From: Magallana gigas
Taxonomy: Eukaryota
Direction: 5' to 3'
NCBI RefSeq assembly: GCF_963853765.1
Contig: NC_088858.1
Location: forward strand, 1,488,001-1,552,000
DNA length: 64,000 nucleotides
Shown: piece after piece, positions 24,477 through 35,519 of the stretch
How the letters are laid out: every line of letters starts with the position of its first letter
Position numbering within the stretch: position 1 is the first letter of the stretch
Made by a program: the position numbers and the translations under genes
The notes under the pieces: model-generated
The model's input: only the letters and a program-made list of their open reading frames with translations
Database searches by the model: none
Told to the model about the DNA's origin: nothing

Positions 24477-27400
24477 ATGTCGACGGAAGATAAAGAACAG
24501 ATAGAAAATGACACGCCAGGGTAAATGCAAAACTCAGTTAATTATAAATGTCTTGGTCAAGCTTTAAGAAAACCAAATATTTAAGAATCATTCATTTTGA
24601 TATAAGTGCAGATATTTCTAATTCTTGTATGTTATATTTTAATGGATGATTGACCATGCAATTATCCAAATTCAACAGAAGATTTCAGGCTTTATCATAA
24701 CAATATTTTTATTACAGCTGTGACAATGAGTATAGCTTCTGAGTGAATAAAGATTAACAAAAGATATATACAAATTCATTCTTGAAACTTTCTTTCCTTC
24801 TCACTATATCTATCTTGTACACACATATAAAACACACAGTAGAGCTAAGCAGGACTGAGACACAATGACGTTATAGCATAGTACGTAAAAAATATTTAAA
24901 TGATGATATTTGTATTCATAAAAGGATTGACTATATCGATATTCAGTAAGATGAAACATTAATGCTACCATTATGTGTCTAAAATATTTATAGAAGCGTG
25001 TTAATATTCAACTACATATCAATGTGCTTAAGCAAATACATATCAACACTATTATTTAGCAAACAACAGATATTATTGTTTGCAGCGAAATGTTTGCTTG
25101 CTCGATTGATATGGTACATAACTTAGTCTGTTGTATAGTACCGGTTGCACTTTTATTTCAGCAAATACTTGATTAAAAATGGGGGGTGAGTACTACACAA
25201 AAGAAAAAATGTTGACGAGTCTTTTTGGAGAGTGTTTCTCACTGCAGGTTATACAAAAGAATGACCACCATGCAATATCACGTTTGTTGTGGATTATTTT
25301 ATTGTTTATTTAGTAACCATGCTTTTGAATATTCATCCACTGTTCCTTGCATCAAAAGAATCTCGTTAGTGTAATTGCCATTAAAAAATCAGCCGCCTGT
25401 TGACTTGCTACAAATTTGGTCAGTTTTTATTTAGCAATTTCCAGTGAAGCATGCACTTATATATTATTTTAATTGTCTCATGTCAGACCTTATAGTTTAA
25501 TCAAGTGCAGAAAGATTTTGAAAACTTTTAATCTACTTCTTGTATCCTGTTATGAATTTAATGTTTTAACTTAGAAACTTTTTGAATAGAACCATCATTC
25601 AATAGATCTGGACTAGAGTCACTAAAGACATGTTTCTTGTGAAATCAAAGAAGGAAACATTTATTAATGATATTAATGATATTCTCTAAATGTATTATTA
25701 AAACATTATGAACACGTGCACATTGAAGAAAAAAATTTGATTGATAAAATGGTGTTTTTGAGGGGGTTTGCACTTTCCATAGAAATAGTTTTTTCAGTAT
25801 TTTTCACCAAAATTTGGTTGATGTGTATTATACACGAATGTATACCTTACACGATTCATTAAAATTTATCACATTTTTCTGTCCTGTATACAGTCAATTG
25901 GTCCAAGTTACAGATGAGGGAAATTGATACATGTAGTTTATCTTTCTTTGTGTAGGATGGTTGGGAACGACAAGTGGTTGGAAGCTTACAAGGACCCAGT
26001 GGCCTCCCTTTACACGCTGACTCAGTGTATATGTCTGTCTGACGTCCAGGCTGATGGAGACTGGAAACTCATCATCGCTGATCTAGGGACTGGCTCCTTC
26101 AACATGAAATTAAAAGTTTACAAAGGTGAGGGTTAAGTACACTATTGTGTGTTGATTGCTGCTTGTTAGCTACACATTGCTCAGCTAAGCAGAAATATTT
26201 GAGGAGGATGGCAGGTATCTGAGAATCTGCATAAACATATATTCAATTCTACAAAATTATTTTCCTACCCCAGAACAGCAATCCTTTCAACTTTTTTTGA
26301 TAAACTTTACATCAAATTATACATGTGTATTACAGTTGAGGTAAAATCAGACTTGACATTTTGACAAGTGTTTATATGTTTAAGGCTTTGATTTGTCCTG
26401 GTCTGACTTTCAGGGACTAACCTGATGAGTGAGCACACCATCATCGACCTCCCCACTGGTGTCGTGTCGTTCTACATGGACACACACGAGCCACGCACTC
26501 CAGGTATACACAAAGTTTGCGTTAATATTGTCCAATTAAATAATCTCATTGTCAGGTGAATTTTCAGTTTATACTGAAACCTAGTTTAAATTGTCAAGAG
26601 TTATTTTAGTGTCAGATGAATATTTTTGTTAAATCGGAAAATAAAGCAATAAATGAGTAAAGAATTTTTATCACTATAAATGAAAAATAAAAATATTTTA
26701 ATTCAGTTTTTCATCGAAGTGTCTAAATCAAAAATTAAAAATTTATTATGATAATGGTTATCTTTTAAGAGTTTTCGCCTATGTGGTTTTATTTTATTTA
26801 CAGCCATAGCTGTTGCCTCAGGACCCTACATTTATGTGTATAAAAACCTCAGACCATATTTCAAGTTCACCTTGCCAACGTTAGAGGTCAACCCGGTGGA
26901 AGCTGACCTCTGGAACCAGGTCAAGGAGGTATAAAACATGGGTGTTAAGGCCTCTGTTACAGTTAAACCTGGTTATAATGAAGGTGTTAGGGTCTCTATT
27001 AAAGGCTTACATATTTTGGTTGATATATTTACATGTAAATTTATACTCTTTGTGTTATTTTGTTATTTCCATTGAATCTCTCATTTCAGGAGAAAATAAA
27101 TATCTTTGTTCTGAGGGAGATGCTGGAAGGAATGAGGTAAGGTTGCTAAGACCACATTATAAATTCTGTCATACATCCCTCTGTTAACAATAAACACTGA
27201 TGAAATGATAACAGTTTAGCAAAAGAAATCTAAGTTGTCAGTAAAAGGTAGGGCAAAATTTAATAAATTCACTAAATGTATTTGACAATTTCTTAAAGAG
27301 GAAGCAGTGATTTATCCCAGTCAAAAACAAGTGTCTTATCATGAAGTCATAGTGCCTAAAGAAAAGATTACTGAAACTCTGTTAAACTTCAATTAACCTC

Positions 27401-30900: not shown

Positions 30901-33900
30901 TTTTAAACCAAAACATTTCATTGGGATTTAATTTAGCCATGTCTTGATCTCTCAAATGTACCACTTATCAACACTGTATTTATGAATACTTAGGTTAAAA
31001 ATTCATCATGGATTTTATTTCATTGATTAATACTGCCAACAAAAATAACAAAATGAAATCCTCAAAGAATATTTGTGCTTAATCTATTTTCGCAAACCTG
31101 TCCTTCAATCTGTCAGGGTTAAATAACTATAATATAATAAGTATACAATATTTGGTACTTTGCTGTGACTGATTATTTAGGTGTTACAATGTACTACATA
31201 TACCTCAATGTATCTTTTTGTAATGGCATTGTACATAACCTGTCTTTGTGTGACAGGGGGAGGACTGGTCATAAAGATTCTGAAGAGGAACGCCACATTT
31301 GAGGAGAAGGATTTGTCGGGGGGTCCGCCCTCAGCCCAGAACACACGACTGAACGTCCCAAAGAAGACAAAGCTCTTCGTGGACCAGACCATGAGGGAGA
31401 GAGAAAACGCCATCAGTATGTATCTGTAGAAGGAAGACAATTCCGTATGCTATGTAGTTAAAGAAGATACTTCTCTGTATTATGTGGTTATTTAACAAAG
31501 AAAATACTATCGTATACAGGGTTATTTTCACCCTGTGTTTTTCCCCCCTTATACACTTGCAAATGGTTTTGCTCGTCTTGAACTCACCCAGACACAGTTT
31601 TGCGTTAGATACTCTTCGTACTTAACACAGTGATTTAAAATTGTTTTGAATTTACCAAGTCTTAAAATTTGCCTGCTGACAACAAGGGCAATAATGGTGA
31701 AAATAAAACAGGGACAAATATTTCCCTGTGTACAGTATTTGATTTTGTTAATTATGCCTTTCAGGTAAACATAGATTAAACATATATGCTGTACATGTAT
31801 TTCAGAGATGTTTAAAAAATACATTCCATATTGAAGCCTTTCTGACTTTGCTGAAAGGTTTTTTAACCGGGTTTTCCAACGGAAAAATCCGGTTATTAAA
31901 ATGGTGAAAATGGCGGGCGGGTGGGCGGGCGGGCGGGCGGCTGCCAAAAGGGTACCCTCATTGTACGGATAACTCCTCCTACAGTTTTCAAGATAGGAAG
32001 TTGTTCTTTTGCAGATCAATTGTTCATATATCAGAGGTGTGCATATTGCTAGGATTTTGATTTCTGATAATTTATGAAAAAAATACCAGCTTTTGAACTT
32101 AGTCATTTTTTGGCAAAATATTGCATATAGGGTACCCTCATTGTACGGATAACTCCTCCTACAGTTCTCAAGATAGGAAGTTGTGCTTTTGCAGATCAAT
32201 TGTACATATATCAGAGGTGTGCATATTGCTAGGATTTTGATTTCAAATAATTCATGAAAAAAAATACTAGCTTTTGAAAATGTTGCATATAGAGTACTCC
32301 ATTTCACTGGATACGTGTTGATAGGATTATGGATACAGTTCACATAAAAGAAAACCCGGTTTGCTGTCACATTGACAGCTTTTCTCTTGTCTAGTATTGA
32401 TAGTCAGTGAATTATTTTTTGTTTGTCAGCAATGCACAGGACATTCCAGCGAGACCTGTATCTGTTGAGATTGAACACACTGAGAGAGTACGCCAAATCT
32501 CTGGACAACAGCATGAATCCAATCTCGTCAGATCCGTCGGAGCCGCTGAAACTAAACGCCCAGGTATGCAAGCTTATAATGGTTTGTTTTAGATACAGCT
32601 ACCGGTATCTTATATTCCATCTTAAAAAGCTTATAATGGATTACATTGGATACAATTATTTAAAATTCTTTTGCACCTTCATTTGGTATAATGCTTAATG
32701 TTAGATTAGTAGAGAACTATTTATCAGGTCAAAGAATTGGTTTGAGCTAGCTCACAATGTTTATCTTATTTATTTATCTGTGTCAGGTCCAAGGAATCGG
32801 CCCGACCTTCAAGCTGACGGTCAACCTCCAGAATACGTCTCTCAGCCAGCCCTCTACCAGTTTACTGATCACATTTCTGTATGACGAAAAACTCTACAAC
32901 TTCAAAAAGTCTTTCATTGAGGTATATATCTCTTTAATTTAGAATTAACTCTGAAATTGACACTATTGATTGTTTTTTAAAATCATTTTAATTTTAACAA
33001 TATCAGCATCATTATGTTCTACCATAAAGTTCAGTATTGGAAGAAATACCTGTATTATTTATCTACATTTATTTACCTTTATATTCACCTGTTAATGGTT
33101 TTCAGGTCCCTATGCTGGTTCCAGGTCTGAACTATGCTTTTGAGACGTTTCTGGAATGTCTGAGTGACAAAGGAGTCTCGGACAACATCAAGGTAAAATG
33201 TTATCATCTATACTTCCCTCCCAAATTTCCTCTGACCTGTGGGTTCCAATGTATTACCATACACCAAACAATCTGGTTTCTTTGTACTGTTCATGTTTAA
33301 TTTGAATCATATCATAAGTTCAGAATTTTCTACATTGGTTATTTGGGTTGTCAATCAGGATGAAAATGAACCCTTCTAGAATTCTGATCAGTTATCAATT
33401 TATTGATCCTATTCTCTGTTTTGTCAGGCCTTTGTTTTAAAGGAGGGATCTCAGGTACCTCTGATAACTGGGGTAATTAGTATGCCCTGCACTGACATCG
33501 AACCAGTATCCCAAGTGTCGACCAAGAACAAGGACCTCTTTGAATAATTAAGCAGTAAATCTAAACATTAACACAGCAGCATGGTAGAACGAAATCTGAA
33601 CTCAATGATTAAGCAGTAAATCTAAATATTAACATGTCAGCATGGTAGAACGTAATCTGAACTCAATGCATGTTGGCTAGTCCAGTAATATATGATAGGT
33701 CATGTTATCTGCTGTTTGATAACTAGCAACCCCATGGCCACAAAAATCCACTTGAATGTCAGTAGCTTAAGTTGGGCCGATTCCAGCATCCTGTTTTTAC
33801 TATTAGTATAAACTTTAATGTGTAAGGCATACTTTTATCAGTGTTCCTATTTACAAGCTCAAATTTGGCCTGGCCTTAAAATCATAGCCTGGCAATAGAA

Positions 33901-34703
33901 TGAAGTCAAAAAAGTTTTATTTTAGTTTTGTATGCCATAATTTTCCACCATTACTCCTTAGTATTAATAGTGATCACAACTACAAACAAACAGCAGAAAC
34001 TTTATACAATTATTCTTAAAAAATTGTCAATTTCAAATTCTGCCAGAGTTGTTCTCAGGTTATGGTCTTGGTATGTGAACTTGAACTGCCTTTTAAGGAT
34101 CAAATATTTTTTCGAGGTATTTGTGCATGCAGTTTCAGATTACCTGAAAGAATACAAGAGTTATTGCCATTGGTATTTAATGAAGAATGCTTATGATAAT
34201 TACATTAAGAATTGACTTATTTAATTAAATGTGTATTAATTCAACTACCATTAATTAGTATGCTTTGTTGACCTGTAACAGTTGTTTGGTGTGTTAATAT
34301 AAGCATGTACCTTACTACTTATAGAAGAATAATAAAGGTGTACTAGCTCCTTAACAAATATAATGTTGATCATGTAATCATGAATTTGTAAAAAGAAAAG
34401 TTTAGATAAATATCAGCTGTATACAGGTATGTTCATTTCAAATAATGCTAATACTGGTAGTTGTAATATAAAAATATATACATGTAAATAGGTGAATTGA
34501 ATTTCAGCCTATGTATGGACAGAAAGAGGAGAGTATGATATGGGGGTGTGTAACTCCTGATGTTGAGCTGTGACAGGGTGACATTGCTGTTGATGTTTGA
34601 TCTTTTTCTGTGACAGGTGTTCGTTCTGAAGGATGGAAAGAGTGTCCCTATCATCACCGGGGTCATCAGCATGCCTGTCAGCGAGGGATTGGTTGTTGTG
34701 TGA
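24477..34703 (+). CDS. BBS1: Bardet-Biedl syndrome 1 protein (BBSome subunit), 593 aa with canonical last exon
   Basis: Exons 24477-24520, 25956-26125, 26414-26503, 26804-26928, 27090-27136, 27424-27535, 28793-28924, 29333-29439, 29743-29866, 30519-30747, 31257-31415, 32430-32563, 32787-32921, 33106-33192, 34617-34703. All GT-AG, 1782 nt in frame. Motifs: [113 protein letters not shown]. Exon 1 is the least certain. Confidence 0.95.
27560..28025 (+). repeat. Tandem copies of the BBS1 exon 6 donor junction plus a (TA)n tract
   Basis: AAAAGACAG|GTAA copies end at 27620, 27709, 27766, 27867 and 28013 (real site 27535). Confidence 0.9.
28130..28812 (+). repeat. 50/62-bp tandem copies of the BBS1 exon 7 acceptor junction
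   Basis: TGTATATTTCAG|ACTGTGATTACCTGCCTGAGT; AG ends at 28145, 28206, 28256, 28318, 28368, 28430, 28480, 28542, 28592, 28642, 28692, 28742, and the real site at 28792. Confidence 0.92.
30244..30420. mobile_element. MITE, TA-flanked CAGTAAAAC termini (Tc1/mariner-pogo type inferred)
   Basis: TACAGTAAAACATGTTATA ... TATAACTGTGTTTTACTGTA. Confidence 0.75.
31505..31737. mobile_element. Degenerate MITE with TACTGT/ACAGTA-type termini
   Basis: Left TACTATCGTATACAGGGTTATTTTCACCCTGTGTTTT; right AAAATAAAACAGGGACAAATATTTCCCTGTGTACAGTA; imperfect inverted arms. Confidence 0.55.
31860..32390 (-). mobile_element. Helentron-associated non-autonomous element (HINE-like) in BBS1 intron 11
   Basis: On minus: 5' ACAAGAG..AAACCGGGTTTTC; two 180-bp units (plus GGGTACCCTC at 31950 and 32130); (CCGC)n microsatellite; 3' hairpin TAACCGGATTTTTCCGTTGGAAAACCCGGTTA; T-rich target. 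This matches the established HINE layout. Confidence 0.8.
33428..33547 (+). CDS. BBS1: Alternative terminal exon (15a) of BBS1, homologous to canonical exon 15b
   Basis: TTTTTGTCAG|GCC, phase 0, matches the exon 14 donor; encodes [39 protein letters not shown]. Usage is inferred. Confidence 0.75.
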   Translation, partial: AFVLKEGSQVPLITGVISMPCTDIEPVSQVSTKNKDLFE

Positions 34704-35519
34704 GGTCCCCCTGGGTCATCAGCATGTCTGGCAGCGAGGGATTAGTTGTTGTGTGAGGTCATTGGGGTCAAGCTAGGGTCATTTGAGGTCATATTTGAAG
34801 ACATCTTAAAAGCATGCAAAGAACAATGGTGACAGGATTTGGGATCATTCTGGTAGTGAATCCGTACAGCCAGAAATTGAATTGTTTTAATTTATTTAAT
34901 TATTTTCTGCCTGTGATTCAAGTGACTGTTCATGACGAAAAGAACTATTACATATTTTTTTATTTTGTGTCTTATGAGGTTAAAGAATTGTTAACATATC
35001 TCTCCAACACAACACAGTATGCCTGGTTTGATAAATTCATGTTTGAAGATAATAGAAACACTTCTATTCTTTCCTGATCTGTGTGCATGTCCACTATTTC
35101 CATTGCTTCTATATAGTTGTATACATACCTCTGGTGTCATTTCAATTATAATTCATTTAAAGAACAATAAATAATCAGTCATGTTCCTTTTCTGTTGGAT
35201 GAATCATTTCCCTAGATTTGGAGTGCATTGCTATGTTACATGAATCACTACATGAAGTATCGGATGGCACATCCAATATGTATGATCCTCAACCAGGTTG
35301 CATGAGAAGAGAATATTTTATAGCTCTTTTTGAAAGCTATGTGTTAAACCTTCCTAAAAGATTAGACATGATTTTTCAGCAATAAACTGTTATTAAGTAA
35401 AGAGCTATTTCGCATATTTAGAAACTGATTGATGTCACACATATCATTAAATTCAGATGCTGCTATGATGTCACACATATTACATTCAAATCATGCTTTA
35501 TATCACTAAAATGAGATAT

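Follow-up and report, generated by a model that had tools for sequence, protein, structure and literature searches.

The Pacific oyster Magallana (Crassostrea) gigas carries two adjacent homologous copies of the last coding exon of BBS1. The gene lies in the window analyzed here, a stretch of 64,000 nucleotides from contig NC_088858.1 (positions 1,488,001 to 1,552,000, forward strand). The two copies, referred to as exons 15a and 15b, are in the same phase and both are under purifying selection as coding sequence. The duplicate last exon is real, old and selected, and both resulting isoforms are already present in public databases. We consider it highly probable that a tandem duplication gave the gene two spliced ends. 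The use of exon 15a is probably restricted and may be controlled by elements downstream of it, and the new protein end may alter contacts within the BBSome.

The window gene is a BBS1 orthologue, as both domains and the named protein of the species match. Three exons match the N-terminal BBS1 beta-propeller domain (PF14779, E 1.5e-18 to 2e-10), and exon 14 covers positions 52-80 of the C-terminal domain GAE_BBS1 (PF23304). On the same profile of 105 positions, the 15a and 15b peptides each match positions 82-103. A BBS1 fragment (P0015) with long exact stretches in common with the oyster exons pointed to the protein cluster that contains oyster BBS1. The RefSeq BBS1 proteins of M. gigas can be placed on the window exon by exon, and the gene is thus the BBS1 of this species. 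Ten RNA contigs show 15 exons per transcript. The features at the 3' end of the gene are as follows.

33106 to 33192, plus strand: exon 14, the upstream exon common to both tails, with a full codon at its end and a donor GT at 33193
33408 to 33427, plus strand: acceptor region of exon 15a, a pyrimidine-rich tract closing in CAG
33428 to 33547, plus strand: coding part of exon 15a, 39 codons and TAA, the derived copy of the last coding exon
34617 to 34703, plus strand: coding part of exon 15b, 28 codons and TGA, the ancestral last coding exon
34704 to 35186, plus strand: 3' untranslated region (3' UTR) of the 15b transcript, with AATAAA at 35166-35171 and the ends of RNA contigs

Two homologous last coding exons

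A first-pass annotation, based on the letters of the window and their open reading frames, had proposed two intact reading frames for the last exon. Translations at these coordinates agree exactly with the proposed peptides. Both acceptors are in phase 0 as claimed, with exon 14 closing a full codon at 33192 and an AG with a pyrimidine-rich tract preceding both exons. The comparison of the first 20 codons was likewise reproduced, with 9 synonymous, 5 non-synonymous and 6 identical codons and neither indels nor stops. Most base differences in these codons (14 of 21) fall at third positions. The proportion of differing synonymous sites is saturated at 0.84, and the corresponding value for non-synonymous sites is 0.19. 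The likeness begins at the acceptor, and the 60 bases upstream are 32% identical in an ungapped comparison. Fainter homology extends as far as codon 23, where MPCTD in 15a corresponds to MPVSE in 15b. Searches with tblastn cross-match the two exons at every oyster locus (E ~1e-7), and exon 15a is single-copy across the 564 Mb M. gigas genome.

The two copies differ in how closely they follow BBS1 of other animals. The ending of 15b, MP-V-S-E followed by four or five mostly hydrophobic residues, recurs in about 110 BBS1 proteins of animals ranging from cnidarians to vertebrates. An alignment of 52 of these proteins shows the same residue throughout at V103, P113, M121, P122, S124 and E125. Exon 15a replaces V103 by A and MPVSE by MPCTD, and then adds 16 new residues closing in DLFE. 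As the 15b tail is common to animals and 15a departs from it, the last exon was originally 15b, and 15a is derived. Very probably, a tandem duplication of the last coding exon took place within the last intron before the sampled oyster genera split. The downstream copy retained the animal-wide tail of MPVSE and four or five hydrophobic residues. The upstream copy retained the 20 residues that make up the final one and a half strands of the GAE beta sandwich, and gained a new polar tail of 16 residues with the DLFE end.

Both alternative exons are directly trailed by a tandem repeat of their own end, 61 bases long after 15a and 53 bases long after 15b. The repeat after 15a is also found in the second haplotype (contig L014). 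Similar repeats copying an exon end occur after exon 10 in related haplotypes or species (P0154, P0155).

33543 to 33668, plus strand: tandem repeat of 61 bases in 2.1 copies, doubling the AGTAAA plus GCATG module after 15a
34660 to 34760, plus strand: tandem repeat of 53 bases, copying the coding end of 15b into the 3' UTR

Conservation and age across oysters

The BBS1 loci of five oysters in four genera were compared, namely M. gigas, Crassostrea virginica, Ostrea edulis, Saccostrea echinata and Saccostrea cucullata. Exon 15a is found between exon 14 and exon 15b in all five, always with 39 codons, the TAA in the same place and the AG of the acceptor kept. The pyrimidine-rich tract is kept together with the AG in every species, and the remaining intron is unalignable. 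Between M. gigas and S. cucullata, exons alone align, and the match at 15a begins 12 bases ahead of the acceptor and ends with the stop codon. The ratio of non-synonymous to synonymous substitution rates (dN/dS) of 15a is 0.04-0.11 in pairwise comparisons, with neutrality rejected in all ten species pairs (P 1e-7 to 0.007). Taken together, exon 15b and exon 14 have ratios of 0-0.03; for 15b the range is 0-0.025 and dN is near zero. Constraint extends into the new tail. Third positions account for 13 of the 18 variable sites in codons 21-39 (P = 0.0009), which argues that the whole frame of 39 codons is read.

The copies of 15a are 77-92% identical to each other and 60-70% identical to the copies of 15b, and the two exons form separate groups. 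This pattern points to a single duplication before the genera split, without later homogenisation. An old duplication under purifying selection, as the first-pass annotation had read from M. gigas, is thus supported by the intact frames, the dN/dS values and the separate clustering. The suggested check by tblastn and dN/dS found the orthologous 15a undisrupted in every oyster examined. In two contigs from less closely related bivalves, of which one is mussel-like, exon 14 and a 15b-type exon are present, and no 15a-like sequence was found in the intron even at very loose thresholds. Another more distant bivalve locus (L008) stops short of the terminal exons. The split between Asian Crassostrea and C. 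virginica, equivalent to the Crassostrea-Magallana split, is dated to ~63 million years (PMC12021676), and the published date for oysters and pearl oysters is ~294 million years. The 15a duplication is older than ~63 million years.

Use and processing of exon 15a, and other features of the locus

Both tails are present in public annotation. The RefSeq isoforms, which are automatic models, include four for M. gigas (X1 to X4: XP_034325135, XP_034325136, XP_011417321 and XP_019919802). X1 (612 amino acids) and X2 (604) close with the 15a peptide, and X3 (601) and X4 (593) close with the 15b peptide. O. edulis shows the same pairing of tails, with X1 at 604 and X2 at 593 amino acids, and X1 of C. 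angulata bears the 15a tail. The isoforms of 604 and 593 amino acids predicted in the first-pass annotation are thus X2 and X4 of M. gigas and match the O. edulis pair. The RefSeq entries for both species have the same two C-termini and the same lengths as described here, and are silent on the exon duplication, on the selected and oyster-specific 15a and on the control of tail choice. A literature search found no paper on oyster BBS1 isoforms. Going by the RefSeq proteins, each protein has one tail or the other. The UniProt entry K1RU52, an old automatic model of 608 amino acids, combines parts of both by joining the first 15 codons of 15a to 15b. A micro-exon of 24 bases is the source of the gap of eight residues between X1/X3 and X2/X4, and it was found in none of the ten RNA contigs.

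25161 to 25184, between exons 1 and 2: micro-exon of 24 bases encoding GKYLIKNG, with a TTTCAG acceptor and a GTGAGT donor

Assembled RNA documents the 15b form. The BBS1 protein of 593 amino acids is indexed in 360 blocks of a public assembly collection, and reading the 24 blocks with the longest contigs led to ten places that could be mapped. All ten contigs are spliced transcripts of 15 exons that join 33192 to 34617. Six of the ten end at 35177-35186, directly past the AATAAA at 35166. One further contig (L016) continues ~200 bases past this main polyadenylation (poly(A)) site to 35387, where it ends next to another AATAAA. At least two 3' ends thus exist for the 15b transcript. The first-pass annotation had placed one AATAAA after each exon, near 34331 and 35166. 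Both motifs are present (34331-34336 and 35166-35171) and the downstream one fits the RNA ends, but the upstream one is not conserved.

The 3' boundary of exon 15a is probably weak, and several short elements in and after the exon may bear on its processing.

33473 to 33478, plus strand: candidate internal donor GGG/GTAATT in 15a, used in the K1RU52 model
33554 to 33560, plus strand: AGTAAAT directly after the 15a stop, either a weak donor candidate (GCA/GTAAAT) or an AGUAAA-type poly(A) signal
33579 to 33672, plus strand: three GCATG motifs (33579, 33640, 33668) with the look of Rbfox-type binding elements
34331 to 34336, plus strand: AATAAA, earlier proposed as the poly(A) signal of 15a, with the motif present and its position not conserved

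The motif GCATG occurs in two to three copies per oyster within 130 bases downstream of 15a, for a total of 11 against 0.59 expected (~19-fold). In an unbiased count of all 1024 five-letter words, GCATG alone occurs at least twice in each of the five oysters. GCAUG is the binding element of Rbfox proteins, and clusters downstream of an exon typically promote its alternative use. The oyster motifs resemble Rbfox-regulated exons in being repeated within ~130 bases downstream and kept over deep divergence. They differ in being putative sites, which could also be part of a short 3' UTR or lie past the point of cleavage. We suggest that the conserved GTAAA and the repeated GCATG downstream of the weak boundary would govern the use of 15a in an Rbfox-like manner.

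Several observations weigh against the explanation favored here. None of the ten mapped RNA contigs contains 15a, all of them carrying 15b, and it is the 15b protein of 593 amino acids that is listed in the 360 blocks of the collection. A query with the C-terminal 65 residues of RefSeq X2 retrieved unspliced genomic 15a open reading frames only (P0292, P0294) and no junction of exons 14 and 15a, although length filtering and clustering make this a weak negative. No 15a tail occurs in the listed and named cluster members of C. virginica, S. echinata and S. cucullata. Exon 15a also evolves faster than exon 15b or exon 14. Regarding control, P values for the GCATG motif are optimistic because the motif was chosen after alignment and the five species are related. 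No Rbfox gene was confirmed in the M. gigas genome. A Fox-1_C profile had no match there, and none in control genomes either, which makes this search uninformative.

Two further screens were uninformative. The sole Logan contig with 15a (L014) is colinear with the genome and hence says nothing on splicing. Metagenome scans left the pattern for the junction of exons 14 and 15a unmatched, as they did the control pattern for exons 14 and 15b. The junction from 33192 to 33428 is known only from RefSeq protein models. The ten mapped RNA contigs show the 15b form only, and the case for 15a use draws on the RefSeq models and the selection signal. Exon 15a is at most a minor form within assembled bulk RNA. 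Splicing of exon 14 to 15b produces the main protein of 593 or 601 amino acids. Splicing to 15a would produce a protein of 604 or 612 amino acids, with 15a probably being a minor and cell-type-restricted choice.

How the 15a transcript is processed can be explained in different ways. With nearly an even chance, 15a might be a cassette exon from 33428 to ~33554 that is spliced to 15b through the weak donor GCA/GTAAAT and keeps the 3' UTR of 15b. The 15a stop would then lie a few bases before the last junction, and the downstream GCATG would act as intronic enhancers. Under the 50-base rule, a stop this near the last junction would escape nonsense-mediated decay. GTAAA is the sole element that every one of the five oysters, O. 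edulis among them, keeps 2-8 bases past the stop, with the form CAGTAAA in four of them. GTAAAT, GTAAAC and GTAAAA are all working donors of this gene, GTAAAT serving intron 1, and the GCATG cluster within 130 bases would, by analogy, correspond to the classic layout of an Rbfox-enhanced exon. However, the candidate donor has an A at position -1, where all 12 resolved BBS1 donors have a G, and no junction from 33554 to 34617 was seen.

The model of the first-pass annotation, to which we give a somewhat less than even chance, is that 15a is a true alternative last exon, with cleavage and polyadenylation before 15b, either just past the stop or near the AATAAA at 34331. An AATAAA overlapping the 15a stop and then an AGTAAA are found in C. 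virginica and both Saccostrea species, M. gigas has an AGTAAA eight bases past the stop, and a conserved block of ~45 bases after the stop would suit a short 3' UTR and cleavage region. Against this, O. edulis has an annotated 15a isoform but no common poly(A) hexamer closer than ~60 bases to the stop. The AATAAA at 34331 lacks a conserved counterpart, with S. cucullata having neither AATAAA nor ATTAAA anywhere from the 15a stop to 15b, and no transcript 3' end was seen between 15a and 15b.

Two other explanations carry far less weight. It is improbable that 15a serves as an in-frame cassette of 45 bases (33428-33472) that adds 15 residues before 15b. K1RU52 has precisely this structure, and GGG/GTAATT and its surroundings, the 11 bases ACTGGGGTAAT, are invariant in the five oysters including three synonymous sites. 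Yet such a cassette leaves the constraint on codons 21-39 and on the stop codon unexplained, the form is missing from the named RefSeq isoforms, K1RU52 is an old automatic model, and a beta strand would be repeated in tandem. As codons 21-39 are constrained, the internal donor at 33472/33473 cannot be the only use of 15a. It is extremely improbable that 15a is a decaying duplicate without use and that its RefSeq isoforms are artefacts of prediction. All mapped RNA contigs do use 15b and no spliced 15a fragment was found, but frame, stop and acceptor are intact in five genomes with otherwise unalignable introns, dN/dS is 0.04-0.11 with neutrality rejected in every pair, and the O. edulis annotation, made on the genome of that species, has the same isoform. 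The reading of 15a as a pseudo-exon was therefore rejected.

Further features were noted at the BBS1 loci. About 523 bases of the window (31864-32386) are missing from the other haplotype (contig L014), which is otherwise 97.7% identical. The segment overlaps a minus-strand open frame of 273 codons (31549-32370) that contains an internal repeat, and it probably represents a mobile element whose insertion in BBS1 intron 11 is polymorphic. In S. cucullata, BBS1 exons 10-11 are partly copied ~4.7 kb downstream of the gene (L002 10258-10486); this copy contains an in-frame stop and is annotated as 'BBS1-like' (P0004). A degenerate copy of the end of exon 14 lies in intron 14 (L002 3735-3785). In O. 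edulis, C. virginica and S. echinata, the head-to-head neighbor of BBS1 is a MUS81-type endonuclease gene (L011, L012, L013, first 300-2200 bases). The minus-strand open frames upstream of BBS1 in the window (~21200-23200) may be the same gene.

Two protein tails and the BBSome

The two tails were compared in AlphaFold models of the last 130 residues of the 15b form and the last 141 residues of the 15a form, each built with ~52 aligned homologues. Both models show the same beta sandwich with a predicted local distance difference test (pLDDT) score of 81-83, and the last two strands are at identical positions (100-107 and 115-120). What follows the final strand is 10 residues of moderate to low confidence in the 15b form and 21 residues, most with a pLDDT below 50, in the 15a form. 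As modelled, both isoforms complete the GAE domain and the tail alone differs. The first-pass annotation had proposed shared domain-completing residues and distinct tails, and Pfam and the two models concur. Its further suggestion was that the distinct tails might affect how the BBSome assembles or handles cargo.

In BBSome structures, the GAE domain of BBS1 pairs with the GAE domain of BBS9 and is embraced by the BBS9 C-terminus, and it also binds the TPR of BBS8 and holds the helix of BBS18 (PMC7018512, PMC7018513). Patient mutations at the interfaces of BBS1 GAE cause Bardet-Biedl syndrome (PMC7018512). The new 15a tail would change the contact of BBS1 GAE with BBS9, BBS8 or BBS18. A more speculative and rather unlikely extension is that oysters evolved a second, switchable BBSome. 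A GCAUG-gated exon would then exchange the conserved tail for a longer acidic one ending in DLFE in particular ciliated cells, for example sensory neurons, larval ciliary bands or gill. Such an exchange might alter docking on BBS9, BBS8 or BBS18, or add a site.

Tandemly duplicated alternative exons used in an either/or manner were reportedly described by Kondrashov and Koonin in 2001 and Letunic et al. in 2002. The oyster exons share with these the adjacent homologous copies of the same phase, the constraint on both as coding sequence and the inclusion of one per RefSeq protein. They differ in being last coding exons with their own stops and unequal lengths, in having homology limited to the first 20-23 codons, and in that the either/or use is known from protein models. 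Tissue-specific splice forms of BBSome-related genes exist in vertebrates, including ARL6/BBS3L, exon 2A of TTC8/BBS8 and BBS5L. As in oysters, splicing alters a part of a BBSome-pathway protein, probably for particular ciliated cells. However, the vertebrate cases concern other subunits and lineages and did not arise through exon duplication, and the tissue specificity in oysters is presumed. The gain is modest, since RefSeq already lists the isoforms and the mechanism is a familiar one.

The oyster BBS1 locus provides a clean and datable example of exon duplication making a new protein end, with candidate control elements adjoining. The C-terminus is among the most conserved parts of BBS1, with M121, P122, S124 and E125 showing no variation in the aligned sequences. 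A natural swap of the tail that keeps the fold and is selected across four oyster genera represents a ready-made experiment on tail function. If oysters do have a switchable BBSome, one class of cilia would handle cargo differently.

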